A DNA stretch of 64,000 bases from Malacoraja senta (Eukaryota), in contig CM075981.1 in NCBI GenBank assembly GCA_038087875.1, positions 1,674,001 to 1,738,000 on the forward strand, given 5' to 3'. Both the position numbers and the translations under genes were made by a program. The notes beneath the pieces are model-generated. The model had not been told where the DNA came from. It did not search any database and was given only the letters and a program-made list of their open reading frames with translations. This document shows positions 821 to 62,558 of this stretch, piece after piece (position 1 is the stretch's first letter; each line of letters begins with the position of its first letter).

Positions 821-876
821 ATGGGTCTTTTATCCAATGAAACCAAATATCGAAGCATAATCAAATTTTGTACGTC

Positions 877-7732: not shown

Positions 7733-7769
7733 ATGTGGATTCCCATTCTTCTCATCTCCTCGCTGCCGG
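7733..7769 (+). CDS. Copy 1 leader exon MWIPILLISSLP(G)
   Basis: aaacaATGT start, hydrophobic peptide, G|gtgagt phase-1 donor; completed by AVWA from the V exon. Confidence 0.85.
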
Positions 7770-10700
7770 GTGAGTGAAAGCCAGATCCGGATATTCCAAT
7801 GATCAATGTTATTTGGGGTCTCATGCACCCTTTCCACAGCAGAGATAGTTAAGTATGTGTAGACATGTAATGGGGGAGATGCAACTCAGTGCATTGTGGT
7901 GATGGATCTGAAATCACATTTGAATATCTAGACTATGTTCGTAGTTTAACCACTGTTGACACGGTCTAATTGCATCCTGGTGATAGTTTATAGGCATAAA
8001 ATAGCAAATGAATTTGGAGCAGATACTCCAAGATACCTGGACCGAAGGACAGAGGTTACAACATCACCAGGAAGTTAATTCTACACCTTTTAAATGTGTT
8101 TACAACTGAGGGGGGGGGGTGGTCGGGATTGTGGACTCATTGTATCAGTTCAAATATTCCCTGCATTTGTCCAACTCAACTCTGTCGCAAACCCAACAAT
8201 TCCCCGCAGTCTGAGACTGAACCACTGTTCTCGCTCTATCCACCCACCCCCAACTCTCTCTCCATCCTCTTTCCAATCCGCAACCCAGTCGCGCTAAAAT
8301 GCAAGTTCAGGTTATTGTCACGTGTACCGAGGTACAGTGAAAAGCTTTTTGTTGCGTGCTAATCAGACAGATACATGATTATAATCGATCCTCTTACAGT
8401 GCATAGATACATGAAAGGGAAATAAAGTGTAAGGTAAAGCCAGCGAAGTCCGATCAAGGGTATTCCGAGGGTCACCAAAGAGGTAGATAGTTCAGCACTG
8501 CTCTCTGGTTGTGGTAGGATGATACTGATGTGTGAGTGCAACTGGAAAGGAACTGTCCCCGAATCTGGCGGTGTGCGTTTTCACGCTAGTAACGCTCTCC
8601 GGTAATATACCCGCATTATTGTAACTCGTCCGTCCTCAGTGTCCTCAGTCAGGGCTTTATAAAGGCAGTGGCGGCGGTGAATGTCTAAACACGGGTCCGG
8701 CCCAGTGTCGGTTGAGAGATAAATGTTTCCGGGACATCTGGGCACCGCCTGGGGTTGAATACATCCTTGACAAGTATTGTAACATAGTTGTATAGTTGTT
8801 TATTTCGTTTATTTGTTTGTCTTGTATTATGGTGGTGGGTTCTGTTTTGTTTTATTGTATCGTCAATATTATTTTCAATAATTAAATAAATTATTTGATA
8901 ATATTTTTTTTTTAAACACGTGTCCGGCCCAGTGTCGGTTGAGAGATGAATGTTGGCAGCGCAGCCGGCGGCACCGCCAATTAAATAGCAAAGTGGGGTC
9001 TTTCTTTAGGGTGAGAGGCCGGGCACCGCCTGGGATTGTTGGAAGGCAGCTCCTGCAACACTGCCGCGCTCCCTCAGAACCGCACTGCGATCCCAGCCCA
9101 GTTTCTGCTCAGGGATCTGGAGTGGGAAGTGAACCCAAATTGTACTGAGCCGCGGACAGAACATTGACACAACTGGTACAATAACAGCACTGTCTGCACT
9201 TCAGACCGGAGACATTGGTCGTGAAGCAATATGACACATTATGGAACGTTTTACGTTTTCTTTCATGTAATCTTCAAAATGTATCAATTACCATTAAACA
9301 GTTAATTTGCTCTCCATCTGAAAGTTTCTCCGCTCAGTTTCAGGTGCAGTGTGGGCAGAGTGGGAAGTAAAAGGAGTTGTGGGAAGAGAGATCACAATCG
9401 ATTGTCACTATGCAGCAGAGTACCGCTCACACACAAAATACTGGTGCCGTGGGAGGAGTCGATCGTGTAGAGTTTTAGTGGAAACAAATGGGCAACACGG
9501 ACGGAGTGGAAGAGTGTCAATCACAGATAACCCGGCACGAGGAATATTTATTGTGACTGTGGAGGATCTTCACTCGGGAAGATACAGGATGGTACAGCTG
9601 TGGAATTTCAACATCAGCCGACCATCCAATATTTAACGTTTTACTCGAAGTATCTGACGGTATGTTTCGCAGCGAATGACTTGACGTCTCCAGCAGAAAG
9701 ACAATACAGGATTACAATCGATCCTCTTACAGTGCATAGATACATGAAAAGGAAATTACGTTTAGTGTAAGGCGAATCCAGCAAAGTCCGATCAAGGGTA
9801 GTCCGAGGGTCATCAAAGAGATAGATAGTTCCGCACTACTCTCTGGATGTGGTAGGATGATTCAGATGCCTGACAACAGCTGTGAAGAAATTGTCCCCGA
9901 ATCTGGCGGTGTGCGTGTTCACGCTAGTAACGCTCTCCGGTAAGGGACCTGGAGGTGGGTGGTGAGTGGGCGAGTGGTGAGTGGGTGAGTGGTTGGGTGA
10001 GTGGGCAGATGCATGGCAGATGAAGTTTAATGTGGATAAATGTGAGTTTATCCACTTTAGTAGCAAAATCAGGAAGGCAGATTATTATCTGAATGTTGTC
10101 AGGTTGGGAAAAGGGGAAGTACAAAGAGATCTGGGGGTCCTTGTTCATCACTCACTGAAAGTAAGCATGCAGGTACAGCAGGCAGTGAAGAAAGCTAGTG
10201 GCATGTTGACCTTAATAACAAGAGGAGTTGAGTACAGGAGCAAAGAAGTCCTTCTGCAGTTGTACATGGCCCCAGTGAGACCACACCTGGATTATTGTTT
10301 GCAGTTTTGATCTCCAAATTTGAGGAAGGACCTTCTTGCTATCGAGGGAGTGCAGTGTATGTTGAGGGAGTGCAACAAGGTTAATTCCCGGGATGGCGGG
10401 ACTGTCATCTGTTGATTGAATGGTGCGGGTGCGCTTGTATACTCAGGAATTTAGAAGGATGAGATGGGATCTTATTGAAAAATATAAGATTATTAAGGGA
10501 TTGGACACGCGAGAGGCAGGAAACTTTTTCCCGATATTAAGAATAATGGATAGGCCATTTAGAACGGAGATGAGGAAAAACGTTTTCACCCAGAGAGTTG
10601 TGAATCTGTGGAATCATCTGCCTCAGAAGGCAGTGGGGGCCGATTCACTGGATGCATTCAAAAGAGAGTTAGATAGAGCGCTTTGGGCTAGCGGAATCAA

Positions 10701-13700
10701 GGGGTATGGGGAAAGGCAGGAACGGGGTACTGATTGTGGATGATCAGCCATGAACACATTGAATAGCGGTGCTGGCTCGAAGGGCTGTATGGCCTACACC
10801 TGCACCTATTGCCTATGTATCTATGTATCTCTTTATCTATGTCTGTATCTACAGTTCCTTGTGTCTCCACCTCTGATATTGAAAAGCAAGACCAATCAAA
10901 TATTCAGCAAGAGAACACTATACCCGTTAGAGTAACTGGGCGCAGTGGTTTCCTGCTGATTGTTATCGGGTGTTACATTTGTATTTGAAGTGAACCCTAC
11001 TGATGTTAACGACTCACGAATAGATTTAGGTTCTGTTGAGATAAGGAAATAAAAGACAATTAAAGATAGACAAAAAAATGCTGGATTAACTCAGCGAGAC
11101 AGGCAGCATCGCTGGAGAGAATGAATGGGTAACGTTTCGGGTCTGAGCATGGGTCTCGACCCGAAACGTCAGAGCGAGAGAGTTAGATGGAGCTCTAAAA
11201 GATAGCGGCGCTATGGGATATGGTGAGAAGGTAGGAACGGGGTACTGATTGTGGATAATCAGCCATGATCATAGTGAATGTCGGTGCTGGCTCGAAGGGC
11301 CGAATGGCCTACTCCTACCACTGTTGTCTCTTATCTCTTGACCAGCTTTATTGTAACCCGTCTGTCCTCCGTTCTCAGTCAGGGCTATGTAAAAGCAGTG
11401 GCGGCGGTGAATGCCTAAACACGGGTCCGGCCCAGTGTCTGTTGAGAGATGAATGTTGGCAGCGTAGCCGGCGGCACCGCCAATGAAATAGCAAAGTGAG
11501 GTATTTCTGCAGGGTGAGAGGCCGGGCACCGCCTGGGATTGTTGAAAGGCAGCTCCTGCAACACTGCCGCGCTCCCTCAGTACCGCACTGCGATCCCAGC
11601 CCAGTTTCTGTTCAGGGATCTGGAGTAGGAAGTGAACCCTAATTGTACTGACCCGGCGACAGAACACTGACACAACAGGTACAATAACAGCACTGGCTGC
11701 ACTTCAGACCGGAGACATTGGCCGTGAAGCAATATGACACATCGTGGAACGATTTAAGTTTTCTTTCATGTAATCTTCAAAATGTATCTATTTCCATTAA
11801 ACAGTTCATTTGCTCTCCATCTGAAAGTTTCTCCCCTCCATTTCAGCTGCAGTGTGGGGAGAGACGTATGTAAGAGGAGTTGTGGCAAGAGCGATCACAA
11901 TCGATTGCCACTATGCAGCAGAGTACCGCTCACACACAAAATACTGGTGCCGTGTGCAGAGTCGCCAATGTACGGATGTGGTGGACACAAATGGGCAACA
12001 AGGACGGAGTGGAAGAGTGTCAATCACCGATAACCCGGCACGAGGAATATTTACTTTGACTGTGGAGGATCTTCACTCTGGAGATACAGGATGGTACAGG
12101 TGTGGAATTACTACATCTAACGGCCGTCCAATGTTAAACGTAGAACTCCAAGTATCTGACGGTACGTTTCGCAGCGATTGACTTGTCGTCTCCACTGAAG
12201 TGCCTGATCAATGTTTTCTCCGGGAATGGTCAGGGCAGCACCGATATCCCGAGGCTCGGCAGCAGTGCAGAGACCTGTGGGGAGCGGGCGGGGGTCGGGA
12301 AACCGCACTCATTTTGCTCTCACCCTGTGCGGGGTCTGCCCCATTGAGCGGCCACCCACTTAGAAACATAGAAACATAGAAAATAGGTGCAGGAGGAGGC
12401 CATTCGGCCCTTCGAGCCAGCACCGCCATTCATTGCCATCATGGCTGATCGTCCCCAATCAATAACCTATGCCTGCCTTCTCCCCATATCCCTTGATTAC
12501 ACTACACCCTGGAGCTCTATCTGACTCTCTCTTAAATCCATCCAGTGATTTGGCCTCCACTGTCCTCTGTGGTAGTGAATGCCACAAATTCACAACTCTC
12601 TGGGTGAAAACGTTTTTTCTCACCTCTGCCTTAAATGGCCTCCCCTTTATTCTAAGACTGTGGCCCCTGGTTCTGGACTCGCCCAACATTGGGAACACTT
12701 TTCCTGCATCTAGCTTGTCTAGTTCTTTTATAATTGTATGTCTTTCTATAAGATCCCCTCTCATCCTTCTAAACTCCAGTGAATACAAGCCTAGTCTTTT
12801 CAATCTCTCCTCATAAGACAGACCCGCCATCCCAGGGATCAATCTCGTGAACCTATGCTGCACTGCCTCAATCACAAGGATGTCCTTCCACAATTAGGAG
12901 ACCAAAACTGTACGCAATACTCCAGATATGGTCTTTCCAGAGCCCTATACAACTGCAGAAGAACCTCTCTACTATATTGAAATCCTCTTGTTATGAAGGC
13001 CAAAATTCCATTAGCTTTCTTCACTGCCTGCTGTACCTGCAAGCCAACTTTCAGTGACCAGTGCACAAGGAAACCCAGGTCTCGCTGCGCCACCCCCTTA
13101 CCTAACCTAACCCCGTTGTGATAATAATCTGCCGCCTTGTTTTTGCCACCAAAGTGGATAACCTCACATTTATCTATATTATACTTCCACGCATCTGCCC
13201 ACTCACTCAACCTGTCCTGGTCACCCTGCAACCTCCTAACATCCTCTTCACAGTTCACACTGCCATCCAGCTTTGTGTCATCCGCAAACTTGCTAGTGTT
13301 GCTCCTAATTCCCTCTTCCAAATCATTAATATATATGGTAAACAGTTGCGGCCCCAACACCGAGCCTTGCGGCACTCCACTCGCCACTGCCTGCCATTCT
13401 GAAAAGGACCCGTTCACTCCTACTCTTTACTTCCTGTCTGCCAACCAATTTTCTATCCACGTCAACACCCTACTCCCAATACCAATCGCTCTAATTTAAG
13501 TCACCAGTCTCTCGGGCGGGTCCTTATCAAAGGCTTTCTGAAAGTCTAGATATACTATATCCACTGGCACCACTTCATCCATTTTACTTGTCACATCTTC
13601 AAAAAATCCAGAAGATTAGTCAAGCATGATTTTCATAAATCCATGCTGACTTGGACTAATCCTTTTACTGTTATCGAAATGCCCCATTATTACCTCTTTA

Positions 13701-16700
13701 ATAATTGACACCAGCATCTTTCCCACCACCAAAGTCAGGCTCACTGGTCTATAATTCCCCGTTTTTTCTATCGCTCCTTTTTTGAAAAGTGGAATTTAAC
13801 TTCTCATTCACTTCACTTTTCACTTAAAGTGGAATGCTCAGCACATTTCCCTTCCTCTGAACTGTATGAAATGTCACCCTGTCAGAAGTTTGCATTTCGA
13901 CTCAAACTAATAATCCGACAGATCAGTGAGAAACAAGTGTTGCTCGCGGTCTGAATACCCCGAGAGTTTAAAAAAACAGTCCCCAGAGCTCAATAGACTG
14001 CGATCAGTCCTCCCGTGGTAGGCCATCCCGCTTCCCGCCCCCACCTCAGGGATCAGTCATTCCCTCCCAAACCCCGCGCTCTCTCTCTCTCCCTCTGCCC
14101 CATCAATGCGCCCCCATCTCCAGCAGCCAACGTCCACCCACCGCCCGGCAGTCAGCCAATCTCTCCACCCGGACATTTCTCCGGTGTTAAGCAGAATAAA
14201 CTCATCTTTCACCCCATCAGCCGTCGCACACAACACATAATCCTCCAACATTTTCGCCACCTCCAACGGGATCCCACTACTAGACACATCTTTCCATCTC
14301 CACCGCTTTCTGCTTTCCGAAGAGACCGTTCCTTCCGTAACTCCCTGGTCAACGTCCATCCCCCCCCCACCCCAAAAAAAACCCCATCCCCTCCCCAAGT
14401 ACCGTCCCCGACAACTGCAGGAGATAGATCACCTGTCTCGATACCTCCTACCTCTACTCCGTCCAAGGTCTCCAACAATCTTTTCGGGTGAGGATTGACC
14501 AGCATCTCCTCCAAGCTCACCTACTACATCCGCTGTTCCAGGTGTGAACTACTATATATCGGCTAGACCAAGCGCAGACTCGTCGATCGTTTCGCTGAAT
14601 AACTCCGCTCAGTCTGCTTCGGCCGACGCTACTTCCCGATTGCTAAACACTTTAATTCCCCCTCCCATCCCCAAACTCAACTTTCTGTCCTGGACCTCCT
14701 CCACTATCCAACGTAAATAGGAGGAAAAGCACCTGGGAAACTTACAACCCATCGGTTTGAATATTGACTTCTCTAACTTCAAGGAACCCTTGCTTTACTC
14801 CTGTCCCCAACCCGCCACCATCCTAGCTCTCCAATTAGTTGCACAGTCAAACTGATTTTCTTTTACTTATTGTATGCCTCGTTGTCACCTTCCCTTCAGC
14901 TCACAATGATCCATTGTCCATTTTCTTTTCACCTTTGATCACTTGTTTTCACACCTTACCTTTCCATTTATCTTCTGTCTCCCTGTCCCATGATTCTCAG
15001 GCTGAAGATGGGTCTCGACAGGAAACGTCACCCATTCCGTCTTTCGAGAGATGCTGCCTGCTCCGTTGCGTTACTCCAGAATTTTGTGTCTATCTTAAAG
15101 GGATCGTAAATTCGTTTTCCACAGCAGAGATGGTTAAGTATGTGTAGACATGTAAAGGGGGAAATGGAACTCGGTGCATTGTGGTGATGGATCTGAAATC
15201 ACACTTGAATATCTACACAATGTTCGTAGTTTAACCACTGTTGACACATGGTCGAATTGCATCCTGATGATAAATGAAAGGCTTAAAATAGCGAATGAAT
15301 TTGAAGCAGATACTGCAAGACACCTGGACCGAAGGCGAGAGGTTCCAACGTCATCAGGAAGTTAATTCTACACTTTTAAAATGTGTTTACCAAGGAGGTG
15401 GAAGTCAGGATTGTGGACTCGTTGTGTCAGTTCAAACATTCCCAGCATTTGTCCGGCTCAACTCTGTCGCAAACCCAACAATTCCCCGGTGTCTGAGACT
15501 GAACCACTGTCCTCGCTCTATCCACCCACCCCAACTCTTTCTCCATCATCTCTCCAATCCGCGGCCCAGTCGTGCTGAATTGTCCAGGGCGAGCCGGGGT
15601 CATCGGGAATAAAACCTGTCCCAGATGAGCAGCGGGACATTGGGCTCACAATTCAGTTTAGTTTATTGTCACGAGTACCGAGGTACAGTGAATCTGGCGG
15701 TGTGTGTTTTCACGCTAGTAGCGCTCTCCAGCAAGGGACCCGCTTTATTTTAACCGGTCCGTACTCTGTCTTCAGTCAGGGCGTTGTAAAGACAGTGGCT
15801 GCGGTGAATTTCTAAACACGGGTCCGGCCCAGTGTCGGTTGAGAGATGAATGCTGGCAGCGCCGACACTGAAATAGCAAAGTGGGGTATTTCTGTGGGTT
15901 GAGAGGCCGGGCACCGCCTGGGATTGTTGAAAGGCAGCTCCTGCAACACTGCCGCGCTCCCTCAGTACCGCACTGCGATCCCAGCCCAGTTTCTGCGCAG
16001 GGATCTGGAGTGGGAAGTGAACCCTAATGGTACTGACCCGGGGACAGAACACTGACACAACTGGTACAATAACAGCACTGCCTGCACTTCAGACCGGAGA
16101 CATTGGCCGTGAAGCAAAATGACACATCATGGAACGATTATGTTTTTCATGTAATCTTCAAAATGTATATATTTCCATTAAACAGTTCATTTGCTCTCCA
16201 TCTGAAAGTTTTTCCCCTCCCTTTCAGCTGCAGTGTGGGGAGAGAGGAATTTAACAGGAGTTGTGGGAAGAGCCATCACAATCGATTGTCACTATGCAGC
16301 AGAGTTCCGCTCACAGGCTAAATACTGGTGCCGTGGGCAGAGTCGCCAATGTACAGATATGGTGGAAACAAATGGGCAACACGGACGGAGTGGAAGAGTG
16401 TCAATCACCGATATACCGGCACTAAGAATATTTACTATGACTGTGGAAGATCTTCACTCTGGAGATACAGGATGGTACAGCTGTGGAATCACAGCACCTG
16501 CCGACCATTCAATGTTTAACGTATATCTCCAAGTATCTGACGGTACGTTTCGCAGCGATTGACTTAATGTCTCCACTGAAAAGCTTGATCCATGTTTTCT
16601 CCGGGAAGGGTCAGGGCAGCACCGATATCTCGAGGCTCCGCAGCAGTGCAGAGGCCTGCGGGGAGCGGGCGAGGGTCGGGAAACCCCACTCATGTTTGCT

Positions 16701-19700
16701 CTCACCCAGTGCGGGCTCTGTCCCATTGAGCGGCCACCCACTTCAAGACACTCAACACATTACCCTGCCTCTGAATTGTATGAAATATCACCCTGTCAGA
16801 GGTTTGCATTCCGACAAACTAATAACCCGACAGATCAGTGAGAAACAAGTGTTGCTCGCCGTCTGAATACCCGGAGAATCATAAACAGGGAATCAGTCCC
16901 CAGAGCTCCACAGACTGCGTTCAGTCCCCAGGTACCTTCCCCTACAACTGCAGGAGATGCAACACCAGTCACTATATATCCCCCCCTTTACTCCATCCAT
17001 GGGCCTCAACAGTCTTTTCGGGTGAGGCAGACGTTCACTTGCATCTCCTCTAACCTCATCTACTCTATCCGCTGTTCCAGGTGTGAACAAGCGGATATAG
17101 TAGATGGGAGACCAAGCGCAGACTCGGCGATCGTTTCGCTGAACAACTCCGCTCAGTCTGCCTCGGCCTACGCTACATCCCGATTGCTAAACACTTTTAT
17201 TCCCCCTCCCATTCCCAAACTGAACTTTCCGTCCTGGACCTCCTCCAGTGCCAGAGTGAGGCCAAAGGCAAATTGGAAAATCAGCGCCTCATATTTCGCT
17301 TGGGCAGCTTACAACCCAGCGGTTTGAATATTGACATCTCTAACTTCAAGTAACCCTTGCTTTACTCCTTTCCATCCCGCCCCCATCCGAAACCTCCAAT
17401 TAGATTCACCTGATAATATTTTACTGATTGTATGCCTCGTTGTCACCTTCCCTTCAGCTGACAATGATTCATTCTACATTTCCCTTTAACATTGTCACCT
17501 TTGATCACTTGTTTTAACATCTTACCCTTCCATTTCTCTTCTGTCACCCAGAACATGACTGTCAGGCTGGAGAAGGGTCTCGATCCGAAACTTCACCCAC
17601 TCCTTCTCTCGAGAGATGCTGCCTGCTCCGCTGAGTTCCCCCAGTATTTTGTGTCTCTCTTAAAGCGATCGTAATTAGTTTTCGCGATTAAATTACAAGG
17701 CATTGAATTGTGTTTTTGGCACGCTGGTCTTCATCAGTGAGAACATTCAGAATATAATTTGAGATAATATGCTTCAGACGTGCAGATGTTCAGTCCACAC
17801 TTTGGGAATTGTGTTCAGCTTCAGTCACTCAGCTCCAAGAAAAGTTGAGATGGACAGCGTGCAGAAAGGTTTAAGGGCGACGTTGCCTGGACAGGATGGG
17901 ATTGACGCAGGGAGCGATTGGACAAACTCAGACTTCATTCCTTAGTGTGGAAATGATTGAGAGAGGAACTTATAGAAATGTATCAATCACGAGAAGCATG
18001 TTCATTTTCCCACGATGTGTGGAATCAAAAAGTGGAGGACAGAGGTAATGGGAACTATTTAAAGAGGGAGGAATAGTAAGGTGCAATTGACCATAATGTC
18101 ATGTTTTGTACAGATGAGTGGCCGAAGCTGAACACAATTCGCACAAGTTCGACCTCAACAACATATGTACAACTGAAACATAACATCCCAACATATGTTC
18201 TGAGGAACAACATTTTCCACACATTGGGTAATATGTACATGGAACCTGCTGCCAGGGGAAGTTGTTGAGGCAGTTAGAATAGCAGCATTTAAAATAAATT
18301 TTGGATATTTGCGTAGATTGGGATCATTGCGAGTGATAAATGAGAAACGCGGACATATGGAAATGTCATAGAAAGACATGTTGGTCGGCATTAATGAGCT
18401 GTTGTGATGGGCATCTTTCGGTTCTCTATAACTCTAACCTTCTTCGGTTTCTGCGCTTCGCACACTCCCAGAGATGTAGATGAGCCGGTGAGGTATCAAC
18501 CGGACGGTTCGGGCTGAGATAAAGTGCTGCTGAGATTTAGCAAGTGTTTGGTTTTTAACAATTCATACAGGTGACTGAATATTTGCTCCATTCCCACAGA
18601 ACCCATTTCTGCTCCTGTGCTCAGTTATCTGTCAGCAGCAAATGCCTCACGTCTTGGAGGCTCAGTGTCAGTGTCCTGTGAGTCTCTCCGTGGATCCCTT
18701 CCCATCCATTACACGTGGTTTGAGAAGAAGGAGCATCGGGTGTCAACGATCTTGAAAGGCAATCAACTGGATCTGAGTTGTGACATCCTCAGAGGTGAAC
18801 ACCTTCGATATTACTGCACAGCCGCAAATAATCGTGGGACAAAACCCAGTGAAATAGTCAAGGTGAAAGTCTTCAAAGGAGCAGGAACGTGCAGTTATGT
18901 GACAGAAATGAACAATGCAGGTGAGTGTTCCTCTCGTGTCCCTGAACCTGCTGCTATTCACCTTGTGGTGATGTTCATGGATTTCTTGTTATTTGCAGAC
19001 GGCATCATTGCAGCCACCGTGAGCTCATGCTGTAAAATGCGAGAGTTTGTTTGGGGGACTGGCAAATAATTGCCCGTAGCTTCCACCATGGAGGTGTTGC
19101 GCAATTTCAGCAAAGGAGAGAAAGACATGCACTTGTCACAAAGGGTTGAGTGCACTCCATCAAATTTCTGCCTTCTGCCTTAAAAAATGCCGCTTGGCTG
19201 CCGCTTAAGGTCTCACAGTCACTTTGAGACATTGAAAGCAACCAAATGCATCCTGTTTGGATCCGCCATCATTTACAATCAAGGATGTGAGACCAAGCGG
19301 AGGCTTGGCGATCGTTTCGCCGAACACCTCCGGTCGGTCCGCAATAACCAACCTGAACTCCCGGTGGCTCAGCACTTCAACTCCCCCTCCCATTCCGTAT
19401 CTGACCTCTCTGCCCTGGGTCTCCTCCATGGCCACAGCGAGCAACGCCGTAAATTGGAGGAAATGCACCTCATATTCCGCTTGGGCAGTCTACATCCTGG
19501 TGGCCTGAACGTTGAATTCTCCCAATTCTGCTAGCCCTGGCTGTCCCCTCCCCTTCATCAGCCATCTGGTTGTCTCCTCCCCTCCCCCAGCCCTCGGGCT
19601 CCTCCTCCGCCTTTTCCTTTTTTCCTTTCTTCTCCCCACCCCCTATCAGTCTGAAGAAGGGTTTCGGCCCGAAACGTTACCTATTTCCTTCGCTCCATAG

Positions 19701-50848: not shown

Positions 50849-53800
50849 AGACTCCTAGCTTGCACCAACAGTGAGGGAATTCTGCACCGCGATGAAATAT
50901 TTATGCATCATCCTGCTTTGTCAACTGATACCAATTGGACGAATATATGTATCTTGCAATTCAACGAACGGTTTCATGAAAGTGACTTCAAAGCAATGTT
51001 CCAAACTTTCCAAACCATATCTGTTTCCAAAACTCATTTACCGCACTGGTCTTAATGTTTGTCACCTCTTCCAAGGTTTCTTTCATCACCTTCGAACTAT
51101 TGTTTTAACCTCTGCGTGGTTTCTGCTGCTCAAAAGTCTTATACCCTGTTAAAATATATTATATGCATTCAACGTCCTGGAAAAAAATGTTTTCGCTGAC
51201 AAATGAATAATCATGCATCAGGATGCTTCTTAATAAATTTTTGTTGTCAATAAATGGTTTGTCTAATTTGTTTTGTTTAGACTGTAAATTTAGTGTTGAA
51301 GAACAGACTGAAATCAGATTGCTGGAGATTTCTCCTGTTGCCAAACGTTAAAGGCGTTAAGGAATGGCAATGATTAATCTTTCAGACCATGCTATCCCAT
51401 CAGAACAAAACTCCAGATGCTGGTTTAAACTGAAGATAGACATAAATTGCTGGGGTAACTCAGAGTGACAGGCGGCATCTGTGGATATATGAGGTAAGTT
51501 TAGGCGGACTCAGCGGCGGTATTCAACGAATTGATCGCCGATCCTGCGCTTGTTCTCGCTTCTCGGCGATCGCTTCGCTGAACAGCTCCGCTCAGTCGGC
51601 CTAAACCTACCTGACATCCCGGTCAATAGACAATAGACAATAGACAATAGGTGCAGGAGTAGGCCATTTGGCCCTTCGAGCCAGCACCTCCATTCAATGT
51701 GATCATGGCTGATCATCCCCAATCAGTACCCCGTTCCAGCCTTCTCCCTATATCCCCTGACTCCGCAATTTTTAAAAGCCCTATCTATCTCTCTCTTGAA
51801 AGCATCCAGAGAACCTGCCTCCACCGCCCTCTGAGGCATAGAATTCCACAGACTCACCACTCTCTGTGAGAAAAAGTGTTTCCTCGTCTCCGTTCTAAAT
51901 GGCTTACTCCTTATTCTTAAACTATCGCTCCTGGTTCTGAACTCCCCGAATATCGGGAACACGTTTCGCTAAACAGTTTAACTCCCCCTCCCATTCCCAC
52001 ACTGACATTTCTATCCTGGGCATCCTCCATTGTCAGAGTGAGTCCCAGCGCAAATAGGAGGAACAGCACCTGATATTTCGCTAGGGCAGCTTACACCCCA
52101 GCGGTGTGAACATTGACTTCTCTAACTTCAAGTAACCCTTGCTTTCCCTCTCAATCCAGCCCCCCAATTACCAGCTCTCCGATCAGTCTGACAGTCTCCG
52201 ACTACATTTTACCTCTCATTGCTTTGTTGTTATCTTCTCCCAGCTAACAATGATCTATTCTACATTTTCCTTGAGCTTCACCCCCTTTGTCCCGTTTTCA
52301 CACCTTACAATTCCTAATCTAATTATCTCCACCTCCCTTGACTTCAGTCTGAATAAGGGTCTCGATCCGAAACGTCACCCATTCCTTTCATCCATAGATG
52401 CTACCTGTCCCAATGAGATACTCCAGCATGTTGTACAACAATATTTTTTTGATTAAATGATTGAAAGAAACAGCATGGATACTGACCATTTGGCCCACTG
52501 AGTCCACGTCAACCAGCAATCAACCCTTTCACAGTAATGTTGATAAACATTTTATTGCTGCAACGAGTTATTCATTTTGTCCACCGTACAAAAGAGTTAA
52601 TGGACTATAAATAATGGCCAAGGTGGCGCAACGGTAGAGTTGCTGCCTTACAACGCTTGCAGTGCGGGAGACCCAGGTTCGATCCCGACTACGGGAGCTG
52701 TGTGTACGGAGTTTTTACGTTCCACCGTGACCGCGTGATATTTCTCACAGATCTTCGATTTCCTCCCACACTACAAAGACGTACAGGTATGTAGGTTAAT
52801 TGGCTTGCTATAAATGTAAATTGTCCACAGTGTGTGTGGGATAGCGTTATTGTGCGGGGATCGCTGGTCAGTGTGGACTCGGTGGGCCGAAGGGCCTGTT
52901 TCCGCGCTGTATCTCCAAACTAAACTAAACTAAACTAAATTAGTGGAAAGTCTATTCTTGTGCCGAACAAAATGGTTGAGTTGCAGCTTGCAAAGCCCGG
53001 GGTGTGAAACTGCAAATACATTGTGTTGCTTTCTTCAGTCTGACTTGTGACTGTAACCCCGCCCATGAAAGAACTGTGAAGGATGTTGTTTGAATATAAG
53101 AAATGGTGACCTGCAAAAACGGAGTAACCACCATAAAGTTCCGAAAGAGTCAAGGATTGCTTTGGGTAAAATGTCCCACTTACAAAGATAAATATTATCC
53201 ACACAGTAAGCAGGGAGACGAGGAAATGAGACCAGAGGCTGCTTTGAACTCATAAACCCCCATGTTAGGGATATCCGAGGAGTGCTGAATAGCCAGAGAT
53301 ACTTGCAGATTCTGTGTTCACATTGATGCTGCCTGGCCCCTTTCAACTCGAGCTTGTTGATGGTCTAATGGGAGGAATGAACTTGAATTGGATCTTACCC
53401 CACTGCTAGACATCCCAAAGTGCCTCATAGATAGTGAGAGGTAAACAGTCTGAGATGCGACAGATAGACACAAAATACTGGAACAACTCAGCGGGATAGG
53501 CAGCATCACAGCAGGGAAAGAACGGGTGACATTTCGGGTCGATGCCACTATTGTGTTTAGTGATGGGTACTGGCTTGCAATGTACTTTAATCTAATATGT
53601 TCAAACAGTCATTTATTTCTTTACACTGATTTGTTCTGCAGTGCTGACACTTTGCTCGCGCTGCTGAAAAAAAGGGTGTGTAGATTCGTAACTCTGAACA
53701 GCATCTTGCGAGCAGCTCGCTGTAAAACTGTTTGTTGAGAAGTGTTTGCAGTAGTCATGGGTCAAAGGCGAATGTAGACAGAATTCAATTGTTCTGCTGC

Positions 53801-55211
53801 ATCGTCCGTTCCTCTCTGCAGTGTTTTTAGGGGGCAAGTATGCAGGAAATAGCTCCTAACAAAAGATCCTTTACTGAGGGTCGCCAACGCTCAGCTAACA
53901 CCAGTGGCGGACTCATCAGTGTGTTACACCCATACTACGTGATACACAACATTGCCACAGATGTACACAACCAGAATAAACGACACTGTTCCACTAAAAG
54001 TGACACACCAGAACGATAGACGGCAGCAGATATTAGGTTATATTATAATGCAACTAGTTGCCTACAGAATGAATTCGTTGCAAGCAGATGTACAAAATCA
54101 GCCAATGGAATGTACACGAACACAACCCTGATAATGTATTCGCTCTGCATTGTAAAGAAGACAAGTTAATAATTCAATTCGCCGTGCATATTCTACCTTG
54201 CTTTAACTTCACTAAGTGTATCACTTCGCCCTTGTTGAGTTACATTACACATGTCAGTTACACTCCACATCCCGCTTTCCCAGCTGATCTCCATCCTGTG
54301 GTAATTCTAGACAAACTTCTTCACAGTCCTCCAGACCGTTAATTTTCTATTTTCAAAATGTGAATACCATGACAATAGTGTTTCAAATTTGAATTGAAGA
54401 GTTGAAGCAGAGAGGAGAGGGTCAAACTCCAATTAACCTCAGCTGATTTCAGATGAAAATCCCCTACTTCCTAACGCCAGCTTCCTGTTTTGCCCCTTGT
54501 CAACAGTAATAAGCAAAAACAAAAGTTCCAATTATTATATTTTTGATCTGCCGGTCCACTTACAAAATCATCAAGAGGGAATGATCGGGAAGTGTACACA
54601 TCTTAGGCGTTTCTACAATTCTAAATCGTCATATTTTATCCAATGTATCATTGTTTACATGAAGGGGCCCGACCCGAAACGTCACCTAACCATTTTCTCC
54701 AGAGGTGCTGCCTGGCCCGCAGAGTTCCTTATGAATTTTTTTGTCTATCATTATTTCCACCACTTTTCAGTGTTAACAGACTCTGAGTACAGAGATAATC
54801 GCCGCTGCATCCTAACGGATACATCACACTTGACGAAGTGGTTGAAGCAGCTGCAATAACAACATGTAACGAGCACTTGGACAGTTCCACGTATGGGGAA
54901 GGTTTGGGGAGTTTCGGGTTGAACGTGGGAAAATCTGACTAACTTAGATGAGCACATTGGTCTAACGCGTTGGGGAGAAGGGCCTGTTTCCGTGACGTAT
55001 GACTGTGATCATCCGACCCAACCATTTGTTAAATATAACCCTGATCCTTTCACACTGTAACGTGTCGAGCTGCTGCTGGCTCGCTGTGGTTCACGATCTG
55101 AAGTCCTGTTCCCTTCTTCGTCGTTGCTATTCGAGAGATGAGGTTGTATCTGAGAGCTACGAGCTGAGCGACAGACTGACAAGTGCTGACCTCGTCACTG
55201 TGGATAAAACA

Positions 55212-58200
55212 ATGTGGATTCCCATTCTTCTCATCTCCTCGCTGCCGGGTGAGTGAAAGCCAGATCCTGATATTCCAATGATCAATGTTATTTGGCGTCC
55301 CATGCACCCTTTTCACAGCAGAGATAGTTAAGTATGTGTAGACATGTAATGGGGGAGGTGCAACTCAGTGCATTGTGGTGATGGATCTGAAATCACATTT
55401 GAATATCTAGACTATGTTCGTAGTTTAATCACTGTTGACACTTGGTCTAATAGCATCCTGATGATAGTTTATAGGCATAAAATAGCAAATGAATTTGGAG
55501 CAGATACTCCAAGATACCTGGACCGGACATAGGTTGCAGCATCACCAGGAAGTTAATTCTACACTTTTGAAATGTGTTTACAACTTAGGGGGGAGTCGGG
55601 ATTGTGGACTCATTGTGTCAGTTCAAATATTCCCTGCATTTGTCCAACTCAACTCTGTCGCAAACCCAACAATCCCCCGGAGTCTGAGACTGAACCACTG
55701 TCCTCGCCCTATCCACCTACCCCCAACTCTCTCTCCATCCTCTTTCCAATCCGCAACCAAGTCGCGCTGAAATGCAAGTTCAGTTTATTGTCACGTGTAC
55801 CGAGGTACAGTGAAAAGCTTTTTCTTGCGTGCTAACCAGCCAGATACATGATTATAATCGATCCTCTTACAGTGCATAGATACATGAAAGGGAAATAAAG
55901 TTTAGTGTAAGGTAAAGCCAGCGAAGTCCGATCAAGGGTAGTCCGAGGGTCTCCAAAGAGGTAGATGTAGAGCCGTGCATGTTCCTTTAACATGGTGACC
56001 TCACTTCTACTAACCACTCCCCATTAGCTTCAGTATAAATGTAACCTTCCCACCCCTAGCTCGCTCTCTAGCTCCGGTAATGGACCACGAACAGCTAGGG
56101 CAATATGTGTGTATACGAATGCAATGCATGCAATAAACTAGAGTGAAGACACCCTGTGTTTGGACAGTCTTTACATGGTGTCAGAAGTGGGATCAATTCT
56201 CCCGTTTGCAGCGCATGATGCTGCAACTCCAACGCTTCACGTTTCAAATCGTGTACCGCAAGGGCAAGGACATGTTTGTGGCAGACACGCTGTCCCGCGC
56301 ACCGCTGGCTTCTACAGCCCGCCACCCGTACGAGTCATCCGACCTGATGGTGCTAAACGTCAACTTCATGCCCTCCCAGCAGTTGCAGTCCCTGATTCAC
56401 CACACCGCCAATGATCCTGCCCTGCAACAGCTCATAGACGTCATCCGTCGCGGCTGGCCTGACCGTCGCTCACCCTTGCCGGCTGGTGCTGCGCCCTACT
56501 TCCTAGTCCGGGACGAACTTGTGCTGCAGGGAGGCGTGGTGGTGAAGGGCCACAAGGTTGTGGTGCCTGCCGCTCTGCGGGACCACTATTTCCAAACTGC
56601 CCACAACGGCCATCCCGGTGCCGATGCCACCCTGTCCCAGGCCCAGAGCCAATTTTATTGGCCCAGCATGGCACAGGACATCCGGGAGAGGGTCTCTGCC
56701 TGCTCCACCTGCAATACCCTCTCTCCCCACCAGCAACGCCAGCCACTCCTGCAACAGCCTGCCCCCGCCCTGGCGTGGATGGCGGTCGCTACGGACATAT
56801 TTGAGTGGCGTGGCAAACATTTCCTGGTCCTGGTCGACTCTTACTCCAGCTGGTTCGAGATTAAGCGTCTGCACTCCCTCACTTCTGCTGCGGTCATCGG
56901 GACGTTGCAACCCCTCTTTGCAACCTTTGGCATTCCTGTGACTGTGCAGTCTGACAACGGGGGCCAGTTCACGAGTGCTGAGTTCCGCGCATTCGCCGCC
57001 GCCTACAACTTTCGCCACATCACCAGCAGCCCGGAGTACCCGCAGGGCAACGGCCTTGCTGAGCGCGCCGTCCGCAGTGCCAAGGAGCTGCTGGAACATT
57101 GCAGACTGTCGCATTCGGATTTTTATCTCGCTCTACTGAATCTCCGAAATATTAGTCGCGACCCTGCCATGGGCTCACCGGCTCAACGGCTCATGTCCCG
57201 CACCACTCGCCCTCCAATCCCTGTCTCCCAGCGGTCGCTACGGCCCGCAATCCGCAGCCCTGCTGCTGTCCAGAAGCGTATTACCCAGAAACAGGTCGTC
57301 CAGAAGCGCTCCCACGACAAGTCATGCCGTCCCCTTCAGCCCCTCTTCGAGGGCCAGGTCGTCCGGATGCAGTCCCCCTCCGGACACCACCGCTTGGCTG
57401 TTGTCGTCGGCTTTGCCGACTCTCCGCGCTCTTACCTGGTTGACTACGAGGGCACAATCTACCGCCGGTCCCGCCAGCATTTGCTGCCGGTCAACGAGCC
57501 CGCTCCGCCTCCCGCAGCCCCTTTTGCTCCCCCGGTTGCCGCCTCGTTGCCTCCCGCTCCTCTGCCCTCGCAACCCTTGGCGCCCCGTTCTCCGGCTGCT
57601 CCTCCTGCCCCCCCCCCATCAGCCATCTCCCGCTCGCGTGCCCGTTGCGGTGCCATTGTCTCCTCCCCGGTCTCCTCGTTCTCCCCCTCCTGCTCACTCC
57701 CCTTTCGGTTCACCTATCGCCGCTCCTGCCCCGGTGCCCACTCTACCTTCGAAGGGGGGGGGGAGGCGGGCTGCATACCCGCTTCGGGCGTCTGGTCAAG
57801 CCGCCTGAACGTTACGGGGAGTTTGCTTGAATGTTTTAAGTTTTTTCCTGACGATGTACGCGCGGGTTTGTGCCTAGCGTATGAGTCGTGGTCTCACTGT
57901 CATCATTGCTGTTTCCCTTTTCAAGGGGAAGGATGTAGAGCCGTGCATGTTCCTTTAACATGGTGACCTCACTTCTACTAACCACTCCCCATTAGCTTCA
58001 GTATAAATGTAACCTTCCCACCCCTAGCTCGCTCTCTAGCTCCGGTAATGGACCACGAACAGCTAGGGCAATATGTGTGTATACGAATGCAATGCATGCA
58101 ATAAACTAGAGTGAAGACACCCTGTGTTTGGACAGTCTTTACAGTAGATAGTTCAGCACTGCTCTCTGGTTGTGGTAGGATGATTCCGATGTCTGAGTAC

Positions 58201-61200
58201 AACTGCGAAGGAACTGTCCCCGAATCTGGCGGTGTGCGTTTTCACGCTAATAACGCTCTCCGATAATGTACCCGCTTTATTGTAGTTCGTCCGTCCTCTG
58301 TGTCCTCAGTCAGGGCTTTGTAAAGGCAGTGAATGTCTAAACACGGGTCCGCCTTTCCGCGGCCGGGTGGGACTACAGGGGTACCAGGCGCTGTTCGCGG
58401 GCACCTGGGGGATTTCCGGGACATCTGGGCACCGCCTCTGGTTGAATACATCCTTGACAAGTATTGTTACATAGTTGTATAGTTGTTTATTTCGTTTATT
58501 TGTTTCTCTTGTATTATGGTGGTGGGTTCTGTTTTGTTTTATTGTATCGTAAGTATTATTTTCAATAATTAAATTAATTATTTGATAATATTTTTAAAAA
58601 AACACGGGTCCGGCCCAGTGTCGGTTGAGAGATGAATGTTGGCAGCGCAGCCGGCGGCACCGCCAATTAAATAGCAAAGTGGGTGCTATTTAATTAAATA
58701 GCCTGTGATTGTTGGAAGGCAGCTCCTGCAACACTGCCGCGCTCCCTCAGAACCGCACTGCGATCCCAGCCCAGTTTCTGCTCAGGGATCTGGAGTGGGA
58801 AGTGAACCCAAATTGTACTGACCCGCGGACAGAACATTGACACAACTGGTACAATAACAGCACTGTCTGCACTTCAGACCGGAGACATTGGTCGTGAAGC
58901 AATATGACACATTATGGAACGTTTTACGTTTTCTTTCATGTAATCTTCAAAATGTATCAATTCTGGGTAAATATTTTTAGTATAATATCTAAAGTGACCA
59001 GCACACAAGTGGACCCGGATCCAAAATTTATAATACTCGGAACATCAGAATTAAATCAAACATTTACAACAACACAAAGAAACTTTATTGATTATAGTAT
59101 AATAACAGGAAAAAATTTAATTCTAAAATTTTGGAAAGGCCCTACGGCCCCCACAATCAAAATGTGGATTATAGAAATGACGGTGACCTTAAACGTGGAA
59201 AGAATCAGATTTTCCCTGTTGGACAAACAGGAATTATTCGTTGGAACATGGTCTCCCTTTATTGATTATTTAAAGGGTCAGAATGGTTCAGCACGGGAAC
59301 CTGACTAATGCTCGGGCTAAAGAATGGATGAAATGTTATACTCTGAAATGTACGAATATATCTCGAATTAAGTTTTTTATTTTAATAATTTTTTCCATTC
59401 TTCTTTAACTATCTTTCTCTTTTTTTTTTTGTTTTTTGTTTTGTTTTTTGTTTTTTTTGTTTGTTTTTTTCTCTTTTTCTTCTCTCTCTTTTCTTTCTTT
59501 ACTTCATCTATCTTTTTAGTTCTATCTAGTTAAAAAAAAAAAAAAAAAAGACAAAAGGTATTGGAGACAATGTAATAATAATGGATAATATTATCAATTC
59601 AAAAATGTAAGCCTGTAATGATGTTAATAGGTTATGTACTTATCTCCAATAAAAAATATTTTCCAAAAAAAACAAAATGTATCAATTACCATTAAACAGT
59701 TAATTTGCTCTCCATCTGAAAGTTTCTCCGCTCAGTTTCAGGTGCAGTGTGGGCAAAGTGGGAAGTAAAAGGAGTTGTGGGAAGAGAGATCACAATCGAT
59801 TGTCACTATGCAGCAGAGTACCGCTCACACACAAAATACTGGTGCCGTGGGAGGAGTCGATCGTGTAGAGTTTTAGTGGAAACAAATGGGCAACACGGAC
59901 GGAGTGGAAGAGTGTCAATCACAGATAACCCGGCTCGAGGAATATTTACTGTGACTGTGGAGGATCTTCACTCTGAAGATACAGGATGGTACAGCTGTGG
60001 AATTTCAACATCAGCCGACCATCCAATATTTAACGTTTTACTCGAAGTATCTGACGGTATGTTTCGCAGCGAATGACTTGACGTCTCCAGCAGAAAGACA
60101 ATACAGGATTACAATCGATCCTCTTACAGTGCATAGATACATGAAAAGGAAATTACGTTTAGTGTAAGGCGAATCCAGCAAAGTCCGATCAAGGGTAGTC
60201 CGAGGGTCATCAAAGAGATAGATAGTTCCGCACTACTCTCTGGATGTGGTAGGATGATTCAGATGCCTGACAACAGCTGTGAAGAAATTGTCCCCGAATC
60301 TGGCGGTGTGCGTGTTCACGCTAGTAACGCTCTCCGGTAAGGGACCTGGAGGTGGGTGGTGAGTGGGCGAGTGGTGAGTGGGTGAGTGGTTGGGTGAGTG
60401 GGCAGATGCATGGCAGATGAAGTTTAATGTGGATAAATGTGAGTTTATCCACTTTAGTAGCAAAATCAGGAAGGCAGATTATTATCTGAATGTTGTCAGG
60501 TTGGGAGAAGGGGAAGTACAAAGAGATCTGGGGGTCCTTGTTCATCACTCACTGAAAGTAAGCATGCAGGTACAGCAGGCAGTGAAGAAAGCTAGTGGCA
60601 TGTTGACCTTAATAACAAGAGGAGTTGAGTACAGGAGCAAAGAAGTCCTTCTGCAGTTGTACATGGCCCCAGTGAGACCACACCTGGATTATTGTTTGCA
60701 GTTTTGATCTCCAAATTTGAGGAAGGACCTTCTTGCTATCGAGGGAGTGCAGTGTATGTTGAGGGAGTGCAACAAGGTTAATTCCCGGGATGGCGGGACT
60801 GTCATCTGTTGATTGAATGGTGCGGCTGCGCTTGTATACTCAGGAATTTAGAAGGATGAGATGGGATGTTATTGAAAAATATAAGATTATTAAGGGATTG
60901 GACACGCGAGAGGCAGGAAACATTTTCCCGATATTAAGAATAATGGATAGGCCATTTAGAACGGAGATGAGGAAAAACGTTTTCACCCAGAGAGTTGTGA
61001 ATCTGTGGAATTATCTGCCTCAGAAGGCAGTGGAGGCCGATTCACTGGATGCATTGAAAAGAGAGTTAGATAGAGCGCTTTGGGCTTGCGGAATCAAGGG
61101 GTATGCGGAAAGGCAGGAACGGGGTACTGATTGTGGATGATCAGCCATGAACACATTGAATAGCGGTGCTGGCTCGAAGGGCTGAATGGCCTACACCTGC

Positions 61201-62558
61201 ACCTATTGCCTATGTATCTATGTATCTCTTTATCTATGTCTGTATCTACAGTTCCTTGTGTCTCCACCTCTGATATTGAAAAGCAAGACCAATCAAATAT
61301 TCAGCAAGAGAACACTATACCCGTTGGAGTAACTGGGCGCAGTGGTTTCCTGATGATTGTTATCGGGTGTTACATTTGTATTTGAAGTGAACCCTACTGA
61401 TGTTAACGACTCACGAATAGATTTAGGTTCTGTTGATATAAGGAAATAAAGGACAATTAAAGATAGACAAAAAAATGCTGGATTAACTCAGCGAGACAGG
61501 CAGCATCGCTGGAGAGAATGAATGGGTAACGTTTCGGGTCTGAGCATGGGTCTCGACCCGAAACGTCAGAGCGAGAGAGTTAGATGGAGCTCTAAAAGAT
61601 AGCGGCGCCATGGGATATGGTGAGAAGGTATGAACGGGGTACTGATTGTGGATAATCAGCCATGGTCATAGTGAATGTCGGTGCTGGCTCGAAGGGCCGA
61701 ATGGCCTACTCCTACCACAGTTGTCTCTTATCTCTTGACCAGCTTTATTGTAACCCGTCTGTCCTCCGTTCTCAGTCAGGGCTATGTAAAAGCAGTGGCG
61801 GCGGTGAATGCCTAAACACGGGTCCGGCCCAGTGTCGGTTGAGAGATGAATGTTGGCAGCGTAGCCGGCGGCACCGCCAATGAAATAGCAAAGTGAGGTC
61901 TTTCTGCAGGGTGAGAGGCCGGGCACCGCCTGAGATTGTTGAAAGGCAGCTCCTGCAACACTGCCGCGCTCCCTCAGTACCGCACTGCGATCCCAGCCCA
62001 GTTTCTGCTCAGGGATCTGGAGTAGGAAGTGAACCCTAATTGTACTGACCAGGGGACAGAACACTGACACAACAGGTACAATAACAGCACTGCCTGCACT
62101 TCATACCGGAGACATTGGCCGTGAAGCAATATGACACATCATGGAACGATTTAAGTTTTCTTGCATGTTTTCTTCAAAATGTATCTATTTCCATTAAACA
62201 GTTCATTTGTTCTCCATCTGAAAGTTTCTCCCCTCCAATTCAGCTGCAGTGTGGGGAGAGACGTATGTAACAGGAGTTGTGGGAAGAGCGATCACAATCT
62301 ATTGTCACTATGAAGCAGAGTACCGCTCACACACAAAATACTGGTGCCGTGTGCAGAATCGGCAATGTACAGATATGATGGAAACAAATGGGCAACACGG
62401 ACGGAGTGGAAGAGTGTCAATCACAAATAACCCGGCACGAGGAATATTTACTTTGACTGTGGAGGATCTTCACTCTGGAGATACAGGATGGTACAGGTGT
62501 GGAATTACAACATCTAACGGCCGTTCAATGTTAAACGTAGAACTCCAAGTATCTGACG
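55212..62558 (+). CDS. Gene copy 3, 5' part: leader 55212-55248, V1 59742-60056, V2 62244-62558 (continues beyond the window)
   Basis: Same splice sites and open frames as copy 2. Confidence 0.85.
56176..56193 (+). promoter_or_regulatory. Primer-binding site complementary to the 3' end of tRNA-Leu
   Basis: TGGTGTCAGAAGTGGGAT is the reverse complement of ATCCCACTTCTGACACCA, as I recall the vertebrate tRNA-Leu(CAA) 3' end. Confidence 0.85.
56215..57966 (+). CDS. Gypsy integrase (RNase H C-terminal remnant, HHCC zinc finger, DDE core, Pro-rich tail)
   Basis: IVYRKGKDMFVADTLSR; AHNGH...CSTC; VATDIF / QSDNGGQF / NGLAERAVR catalytic motifs. The first internal ATG at 56215 lies within ORF 56143-57966. 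Confidence 0.88.
   Translation: MMLQLQRFTFQIVYRKGKDMFVADTLSRAPLASTARHPYESSDLMVLNVNFMPSQQLQSLIHHTANDPALQQLIDVIRRGWPDRRSPLPAGAAPYFLVRDELVLQGGVVVKGHKVVVPAALRDHYFQTAHNGHPGADATLSQAQSQFYWPSMAQDIRERVSACSTCNTLSPHQQRQPLLQQPAPALAWMAVATDIFEWRGKHFLVLVDSYSSWFEIKRLHSLTSAAVIGTLQPLFATFGIPVTVQSDNGGQFTSAEFRAFAAAYNFRHITSSPEYPQGNGLAERAVRSAKELLEHCRLSHSDFYLALLNLRNISRDPAMGSPAQRLMSRTTRPPIPVSQRSLRPAIRSPAAVQKRITQKQVVQKRSHDKSCRPLQPLFEGQVVRMQSPSGHHRLAVVVGFADSPRSYLVDYEGTIYRRSRQHLLPVNEPAPPPAAPFAPPVAASLPPAPLPSQPLAPRSPAAPPAPPPSAISRSRARCGAIVSSPVSSFSPSCSLPFRFTYRRSCPGAHSTFEGGGEAGCIPASGVWSSRLNVTGSLLECFKFFPDDVRAGLCLAYESWSHCHHCCFPFQGEGCRAVHVPLTW
58963..59672 (+). mobile_element. Same truncated L1 insertion in copy 3
   Basis: TSD at 58948-58962 and 59673-59687; same sequence as in copy 2. 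Confidence 0.85.

Follow-up and report, generated by a model that had tools for sequence, protein, structure and literature searches.

A young tandem array of MDIR-family genes in the skate Malacoraja senta, predicted to encode a six-domain receptor of activating type

The window analysed here, a stretch of 64,000 nucleotides of Malacoraja senta (GenBank assembly GCA_038087875.1, contig CM075981.1, positions 1,674,001 to 1,738,000 of the forward strand), carries a real, well-defined and young tandem set of genes of the modular domain immune-type receptor (MDIR) family, activating-type by their predicted transmembrane (TM) segment. Each unit of about 24 kb holds one gene on the + strand, composed of a leader, three V exons, a C2 exon, a fourth V and a second C2 exon of immunoglobulin (Ig) type, a stalk, a TM exon and a short tail. 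Our overall reading, to which we assign a probability of roughly 80%, is that of a tandem MDIR array encoding a six-domain receptor with arginine in its TM segment, which gained its extra V domains by recombination, was shaped by recent duplication and gene conversion, and presumably acts as an adaptor-coupled activating receptor. Among named proteins, MDIR5 and MDIR3 of the clearnose skate, Rostroraja (Raja) eglanteria, come nearest.

Structure and age of the tandem array

Repeats were detected with self-blastn, and exons were sought through stop-to-stop frames, tblastn and motif searches. The window has no N runs, and the tandem unit of ~23-24 kb is present in it in ~2.6 copies. Self-matches join 1-8670 with 23137-31817 (98.95% identity), 14684-31635 with 39024-55966 (99.64%), 31630-37481 with 58144-64000 (99.54%) and, at 96.6% only, 9275-13618 with 33159-37493. 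Ig-type exons occur exclusively on the + strand, in an order that is constant across the units: the leaders begin at 7733, 30881 and 55212, V exons are situated at about 9.3, 11.8, 16.2 and 20.6 kb, again at 33.2, 35.7, 40.5 and 44.9 kb, and again at 59.7 and 62.2 kb, and C2 exons at about 18.6 and 22.1 kb and again at 42.9 and 46.4 kb. A second leader exon, and with it a second gene per unit, was sought near 15018, since 15116-15576 resembles the intron that follows the leader. It was rejected, because tblastn returned three leader copies only and the homology begins 62 nt past the leader; each unit holds one gene rather than two.

An earlier note on this DNA had described four copies with a reconstructable structure of 11 exons, all of them situated between 7733, the first leader ATG, and 62558, the end of the last V exon. 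Four tandem copies, designated g0 to g3 and forming a clustered multigene family, do exist within the 64 kb, but the rest of that description has to be amended. The coding exons number 10 (leader, V1, V2, V3, C2a, V4, C2b, stalk, TM and tail), and an eleventh could only be untranslated; g2 alone is intact, g1 is frameshifted, g3 comprises leader, V1 and V2 only, and the fourth copy, g0, is a remnant with stalk, TM and tail exons that lies outside the proposed interval.

The only intact complete copy, g2 (30881-50848), has an uninterrupted translation of 707 aa and retains 10 open exons, every splice site, the full set of 28 cysteines and the conserved TM motif. All its splice sites are of the GT-AG type, and all Ig exons are in phase 1-1. 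The leader exon (30881-30917, +) encodes MWIPILLISSLP and one base of the codon that follows, has a phase 1 donor and matches the N-termini of MDIR5 and MDIR3. It is followed on the same strand by V1 (33222-33542, a pIgR/CD300-type V, Pfam V-set 1e-13), V2 (35725-36039, V-set 7.6e-14), V3 (40560-40874, V-set 1.1e-12, with matches to pIgR and CD300 among PDB sequences), C2a (42931-43251, FCRL-type), V4 (44956-45273, a membrane-proximal V subtype, V-set 3.5e-10) and C2b (46441-46761), both C2 exons matching Pfam Ig_C17orf99/Ig_3/Ig_2 and FCRL5. Further downstream, also on the + strand, lie a stalk exon of 49 nt (47745-47793, GHEYSCENSITSNYSA, phase 1 in and phase 2 out, collinear with MDIR5), a TM exon of 91 nt (50092-50182, SYISWNVGRWLFFLLLVLWSISTAVFTRGCK, tblastn E 6e-13) and the last coding exon (50801-50848, RRDESEPRHSTHELE and then a stop), near-identical to the C-terminus of MDIR5. 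These three exons were located with C-terminal tails of relatives as tblastn queries, hydrophobicity alone being not enough: the first TM candidates, hydrophobic open reading frames at 23616-23750 and 25153-25356, were rejected once the tails of relatives had located the true TM exon.

At V1 and V4 two acceptor AGs stand 6 nt apart (cag/tttcag/), at 33222/33228 and 44956/44962 in g2, at 9338/9344 and 20625/20631 in g1, and at 59736/59742 in g3. In relatives, including MDIR proteins derived from cDNA, the upstream acceptor is used, which adds the residues 'VS'; at V2 and V3 of g2 the upstream AG has been lost and the linkers are two residues shorter. As the upstream acceptors are present at V1 and V4 and are used by relatives, the g2 product is likely to be 711 aa long. 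At the other end of the protein, the relatives MDIR3, P0004 and P0153 begin with 'MDKTMW', and here the upstream codon is GTG (VDKTMW) at 7721-7735, as well as at 30869 and 55200, so that the second Met (MWIPILL) is the expected start of translation.

Copy g1 (7733-26517, +) is a full gene body with AG/GT boundaries at all exons, namely leader 7733-7769, V1 9338/9344-9659, V2 11847-12161, V3 16228-16542, C2a 18600-18920, V4 20625/20631-20942, C2b 22110-22430, stalk 23414-23462, TM 25761-25851 and tail 26470-26517. As assembled it is frameshifted by one nucleotide: its V1 exon, 316 nt long when counted from the 9344 acceptor and thus one nt longer than that of g2, has an extra G at 9576 (GGG versus GG in g2 and g3) within an otherwise identical stretch of 1.2 kb. 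The extra G may mark a genuine null allele of recent origin or be a consensus error, and skipping of V1 would keep the frame. The two remaining copies are cut by the ends of the window. That at the start, g0 (278-3379, +), is the 3' remnant of an upstream copy, with stalk 278-326, TM 2623-2713 and a tail with stop at 3332-3379 whose translation is identical to the g2 tail; its region is 99% identical to 23137-31817 and to 47468-55966. That at the end, g3 (55212-62558, +), is the 5' part of a further copy with leader 55212-55248, V1 59736/59742-60056 and V2 62244-62558, all of them open, in a region 99.5% identical to unit 2.

Identity between the units ranges from 95 to 99.9% and forms a mosaic. 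Between units 1 and 2, segment 7733-9274 differs by 4-6% and by an indel of ~0.7 kb, 9275-10463, around V1, shows almost no divergence, 10464-15915 differs by 2-5%, and the following 15 kb (15916-30880) hold just 17 substitutions; the 5' parts of units 2 and 3 share 99.5% identity. In a three-way comparison units 2 and 3 group against unit 1 throughout, except in the V1 tract, where all three agree. This tract of 1.2 kb (9275-10463, 33159-34346 and 59673-60860), near-identical in three units and bordered by flanks in which unit 1 differs from units 2/3 by 2-6%, has the appearance of a gene-conversion tract, and the mosaic as a whole fits recent duplication combined with patchy gene conversion. 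The array is thus young or homogenised by gene conversion, which bears out the recent amplification suggested at the outset. Positive selection on the V domains was considered and not retained: pN/pS is 0.66 for V2 of g1 versus V2 of g2 and 0.9-1.8 among the V domains within g2 (1.2-1.8 when V1, V2 and V3 are compared with one another), the counts being too small for significance.

Unit 3 alone carries a long terminal repeat (LTR) retroelement in intron 1 of g3 (55967-58143, +), found by the repeat search and by comparison of the filled with the empty site. Its 212-nt LTRs are 100% identical and have TG...CA ends, the target duplication is the 5-bp GTAGA, and the single open reading frame encodes integrase domains only (Pfam Integrase_H2C2 3e-15, rve 8.5e-14), with neither reverse transcriptase nor gag. 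The element, non-autonomous or truncated, was inserted very recently and sets unit 3 apart as a physical copy of its own, or as a haplotype of its own at the least; together with the unit-specific indels, the insertion distinguishes the physical copies. The V1-V2 and V2-V3 introns are in addition filled with fragments of a long interspersed nuclear element (LINE) reverse transcriptase (Pfam RVT_1 5e-9) and repeat copies of the same element (12875-13426 on the - strand, 36240-38017 and 33874-34714), which is present several times per unit and in both orientations.

Domain types, family membership and the origin of the additional V exons

All four V exons of g2 were recognized as Pfam V-set (E 3.5e-10 to 7.6e-14) and both C2 exons as Ig_C17orf99/Ig_3/Ig_2. 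In comparison with PDB sequences, V1 aligned to domain 1 of pIgR with a per-domain E of 6e-15 and with all four cysteines in register, including the extra 'KYWC...C' pair, and the V exons matched CD300/CMRF35 chains with E of 1e-18 to 3e-19 (CLM-1/CD300f 3e-19) and, more weakly, NKp44, TLT-1 and Fc-mu-R. The C2 exons matched human FCRL5, C2a with a sum over six domains of E 4.5e-38 (weaker matches being FCRL4 and domains 6-7 of CD22) and C2b with a summed E of 1.4e-42 and 4e-8 for the best single domain; the motifs PVS.PVL, GS.PI.Y and YYCTA.N are common to both sides. The predicted ectodomain accordingly combines V domains of the pIgR/CD300 type with C2 domains of the FCRL type, which confirms the mixture of V domains bearing the KYWC..C cysteine pair with FcR-like C2 domains described in the earlier note.

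Relatives were collected by an exhaustive protein search with C2a, which gave 506 matches, and named through word-index searches seeded with two full-length relatives. The named matches include 'Modular domain immune-type receptor' 2, 3 and 5 of R. eglanteria, and many others are automatically labelled 'polymeric immunoglobulin receptor-like' or 'Fc receptor-like protein 5'. The relatives span skates (Amblyraja, Leucoraja, Rhinoraja), rays, sawfish, electric ray, many sharks and the chimaera Callorhinchus. MDIR5 (P0186, 501 aa) is 77.5% identical to residues 213-707 of g2, gapless at the exon joins, and MDIR3 (P0166, 701 aa) is 72.8% identical to residues 107-679. No protein exceeded 80% identity in these searches, and the copies of the species itself are therefore apparently absent from protein collections. 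One relative, P0005 of Rhinoraja longicauda ('TRIM69-like', 760 aa), joins a TRIM RING/B-box N-terminus to an MDIR C-terminus of C2-V-C2 with the arginine-containing TM segment, and is probably a prediction mis-joined across adjacent genes.

The comparison with Raja MDIR, CD300, pIgR and FCRL proteins called for in the earlier note thus led to MDIR5 and MDIR3 as the nearest named proteins and not to an unrelated family, and because of these two matches the genes of the array can be assigned to the MDIR family on sequence grounds, in line with the MDIR-type identity proposed there. Members of the family described by Cannon et al. in 2006 reportedly have one to six Ig domains per receptor, combined from a few Ig-domain subfamilies (CMRF35/pIgR/TREM-like and FcR-homologue-like); the modular ectodomain of g2 has six, in the order V-V-V-C2-V-C2.

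That order had been singled out as unusual, and so it proved when V and C2 profiles built from g2 were used to scan ~260 relatives: V-C2 was found in 43 proteins, V-C2-V-C2 in 32, (V-C2)x3 in 16 and V-V-C2-V-C2 in six, with MDIR3 among them, and none of the relatives scanned shared V-V-V-C2-V-C2 with g2. In the tree of V domains, g2 V1 stands with domain 1 of Amblyraja radiata P0164 and P0165, V2 with domain 2 of A. radiata P0164, and V3 with domain 3 of L. erinacea P0152 and domain 2 of A. radiata P0167, all with starred support, and V4 falls in a separate, well-supported membrane-proximal clade with domain 3 of MDIR5 and domain 4 of MDIR3. Since each N-terminal V of g2 groups with a domain from another skate genus and not with its neighbours in g2, the three N-terminal V subtypes predate the skate genera, and the unusual thing is their combination in one gene.

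The introns between the V exons bear traces of how this combination may have come about. In the V1-V2 intron a duplication junction was placed at 33576-33587, where ~40 nt of flank downstream of a V exon are followed by intron-1 sequence from ~596 nt past the leader; when this intron was compared with the unit by blastn, 33587-33832 aligned to 31513-31758 (88.6%) and 35219-35724 to intron 1, in its 3' part. In the V2-V3 intron the junction lies at 39455-39458 (15116 in unit 1), where ~1.1 kb of an intron of the V-to-C2 type, with transposable element and LINE insertions, passes into intron-1 sequence from 62 nt past the leader: 38234-39458 matches 41071-42014 at 80-84%, 39455-39914 matches 30979-31443 at 87%, and the homology runs on to the V3 acceptor. 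These junctions mark the extra V exons as products of unequal recombination within one gene or between neighbouring paralogues, the V-domain tree favouring paralogues for the V2-V3 event. Two additional N-terminal V exons were joined to an MDIR5-like core of four domains and its tail by unequal recombination or segmental duplication, each event moving one V exon together with the 3' part of intron 1, which explains why the V exons begin with codons of a signal-peptide end (AVWGE/ALWAE).

Predicted signalling and competing explanations

A single arginine is located at the outer end of the TM hydrophobic run, and the tail that follows has 20-21 aa and no tyrosine, as in one of the two forms of MDIR, which are type I receptors with either a charged TM segment and a short tail or a tail with immunoreceptor tyrosine-based inhibitory motifs (ITIMs). 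The segment W.V.RW[LV][LF]F...S.S..FTR is found in 43 relatives, ranging from skates to sharks, and each time a short tail follows it; the same ectodomain types are found elsewhere with an uncharged TM and long tails that contain several ITIM-like motifs, a pattern of paired activating and inhibitory receptor families. Every copy in the window that includes tail exons is of the arginine type, and tblastn gave no significant match to ITIM-type tail exons in 46.7-55.3 kb. Pairing with FcR-gamma is established for KIR2DL4 and macaque activating KIR, receptors that also have arginine in the TM segment (PMC8102735). From the conserved arginine, the ITIM-tailed counterparts and the KIR precedent, together with the short tail devoid of motifs, we infer an adaptor-coupled receptor of activating type.

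The product would be a type I membrane protein with a signal peptide, three pIgR/CD300-type V domains, an FCRL-type C2, a fourth V, a second C2 and a short cysteine-containing stalk, followed by a TM helix that opens with the conserved Arg-Trp and by a tail of ~20 residues with no tyrosine. All six Ig exons would be joined in one mRNA, the receptor would be exposed at the cell surface and bind a ligand through its ectodomain, the TM arginine would pair with the acidic residue of an adaptor carrying an immunoreceptor tyrosine-based activation motif (ITAM), of the FcR-gamma, CD3-zeta or DAP12 class, and an activating signal would follow. Inhibitory MDIRs with near-identical ectodomains and ITIM-like tails would act as counterparts.

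Several observations weigh against parts of this scheme. The V2-to-V3 join was found in none of the retrieved proteins, which leaves the six-domain product without a counterpart among them, the V1-V2 join being confirmed by A. radiata P0164, and since all Ig exons are in phase 1-1, five-domain isoforms are equally possible. The arginine stands at the very edge of the hydrophobic run and might be a membrane-boundary residue only, and MDIR5 is said to have been listed in the 2006 MDIR paper as a form with no signalling motifs. A homologue of FcR-gamma was not found in sharks (Akula et al., 2014, PMC4016189). Of the two complete copies, g1 is frameshifted as assembled. No transcript of the array copies was seen: in runs X1 and X2, from a related species and flagged as possibly DNA, exon bins were covered, unique intron bins had zero coverage and no splice joints were listed, an exon-only pattern that intron divergence between species would also produce, repeats dominating the mapped reads.

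The most serious competitor concerns the signal itself. The molecules might be adhesion, decoy or ligand-capture receptors, for example polymeric-Ig or Fc receptors, that are not coupled to ITAM and in which the arginine serves only as a membrane anchor. Its edge position would agree with this, as would the V domains, about equally close to domain 1 of pIgR and to CD300, and the C2 domains, which are closest to the Ig-binding FCRL5, in fish for which reviews report no known pIgR or FcR (PMC4016189, PMC13337447). We nevertheless hold it unlikely, given that Arg-Trp and the mid-helix Ser/Thr are kept from skates to sharks, as would result from pairing of the helix with that of a partner chain, that the same ectodomain types occur with long tails bearing multiple ITIM-like motifs (MDIR3, P0153, P0002), a hallmark of paired families, and that the tail has no recognisable sorting or transcytosis signals.

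Still less probable, in our estimate, is that the copies are non-functional young duplicates, pseudogenes or unexpressed, of a birth-and-death family, with g2 intact merely on account of its youth. Such a fate would accord with the frameshift in V1 of g1, the fresh LTR insertion in g3, the near-neutral pN/pS of V2 and the lack of a transcript among the data seen, but g2 has preserved its exons, splice sites, cysteines and TM motif in full, the g1 defect amounts to a single G in a short G run that could be an assembly error in a skippable exon, and an intronic LTR insertion need not damage g3. We regard as very improbable that part of the array is an assembly artefact, the tandem placement of a mis-resolved repeat or of a single unit's two haplotypes, with a true copy number that is lower. 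The few substitutions between units 1 and 2 in their 15-kb segment and the 99.5% identity of units 2 and 3 are within the allelic range, and the LTR insertion of unit 3 could be polymorphic on one haplotype. Yet the window is gapless and its four units stand in continuous sequence with differing pairwise relations, unit 1 being separated from units 2 and 3 by 2-6% and by indels of ~0.5-0.7 kb in the 5' half, and unit 0, in the tail region, by ~1% from both unit 1 and unit 2, which one haplotype duplication cannot explain. Assembly duplication may account for the most similar pair of units, but not for the whole four-unit mosaic. Same-species DNA contigs (runs X3 and X4) matched the units closely, their word depth being without a single-copy baseline.

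Place among known receptors

The genes of the array, read as activating-type MDIRs, are a fairly ordinary addition to a known family, and their domain order is an unlisted yet unsurprising variant, as the family was described in 2006 and automatic annotation already names members of it. What is gained are gene models of an activating-type MDIR at the level of coordinates and a view of how the family grows, with V exons acquired singly together with the 3' part of intron 1, and units of 24 kb then duplicated and homogenised in patches. The findings also add to the evidence that cartilaginous fish are rich in genes with pIgR-type V and FCRL-type C2 domains. Cartilaginous fish have been stated to lack homologues of PIGR and FcRL (Akula et al., 2014, PMC4016189; a 2026 review, PMC13337447), and the similarities of MDIRs to these receptor types were already noted in the 2006 MDIR paper, as cited in PMC3031540. 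NCBI annotation and the domain matches reveal a large elasmobranch family composed of exactly these two types, and the matches, like the spread of the family across elasmobranchs and a chimaera, do not fit the absence claimed in the Fc-receptor literature. Because MDIRs unite the Ig-binding domain types of other vertebrates, V of the pIgR/Fc-alpha-mu-R/Fc-mu-R type and C2 of the FCRL type, it is conceivable, although we rate it a long shot, that MDIRs such as g2 are the Fc or polymeric-Ig receptors of cartilaginous fish, the six-domain form with TM arginine being activating for skate IgM, IgW or IgNAR.

Among MDIRs, MDIR5 resembles g2 most in the V-C2-V-C2 core and stalk and is near-identical to it in the TM segment (SYISWKVGRWLLFLLLVIWSISTAVFTRG) and tail (KKRDESEPRHSAHELQ), but lacks the two additional N-terminal V domains; the shortened V2 and V3 linkers of g2, with their lost acceptor AG, further separate the two. 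R. eglanteria MDIR3 and the A. radiata 'pIgR-like' proteins P0164, P0165 and P0167 share V-V-C2-V-C2 ectodomains with g2 at 73-77% identity, whereas they have five Ig domains, an uncharged TM and long tails with 3-5 ITIM-like tyrosine motifs. The six-domain proteins P0153 of L. erinacea, P0002 of Rhinoraja longicauda, P0171 of Pristis and P0173 of Hemitrygon align with g2 from end to end at 52-65% identity, P0171 and P0173 also having the arginine in the TM segment, and all four differ from it in their (V-C2)x3 layout.

Outside the MDIR family the likeness is confined to single domain types. With mammalian pIgR and CD300, g2 shares the V-domain type, the B-F disulfide, the extra C-C' disulfide ('KYWC...C') and the 'DTGWY.CG' F strand. 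The ectodomain of pIgR, however, consists of V-type domains only, five in mammals and at least two in teleosts, with no C2 domain, and ends in a long tail for sorting and transcytosis, whereas g2 has two interleaved FCRL-type C2 domains and a tail of 20-21 aa. CD300/CMRF35 proteins carry just one V domain, borne on a mucin-like stalk, as opposed to six Ig domains, so that the V-domain type alone is common to both, and FCRL-type C2 domains are found neither in CD300 nor in pIgR. Human FCRL5 and FCRL4 share with g2 the C2 motifs, that is, the PVS.PVL start, GS.PI.Y and YYCTA.N; their ectodomains comprise C2/FcR-type domains only, with no V of the pIgR/CD300 type, and their tails bear ITIM and/or ITAM-like tyrosine motifs, unlike g2, with its tyrosine-free tail and its V-set domains at four of six positions.

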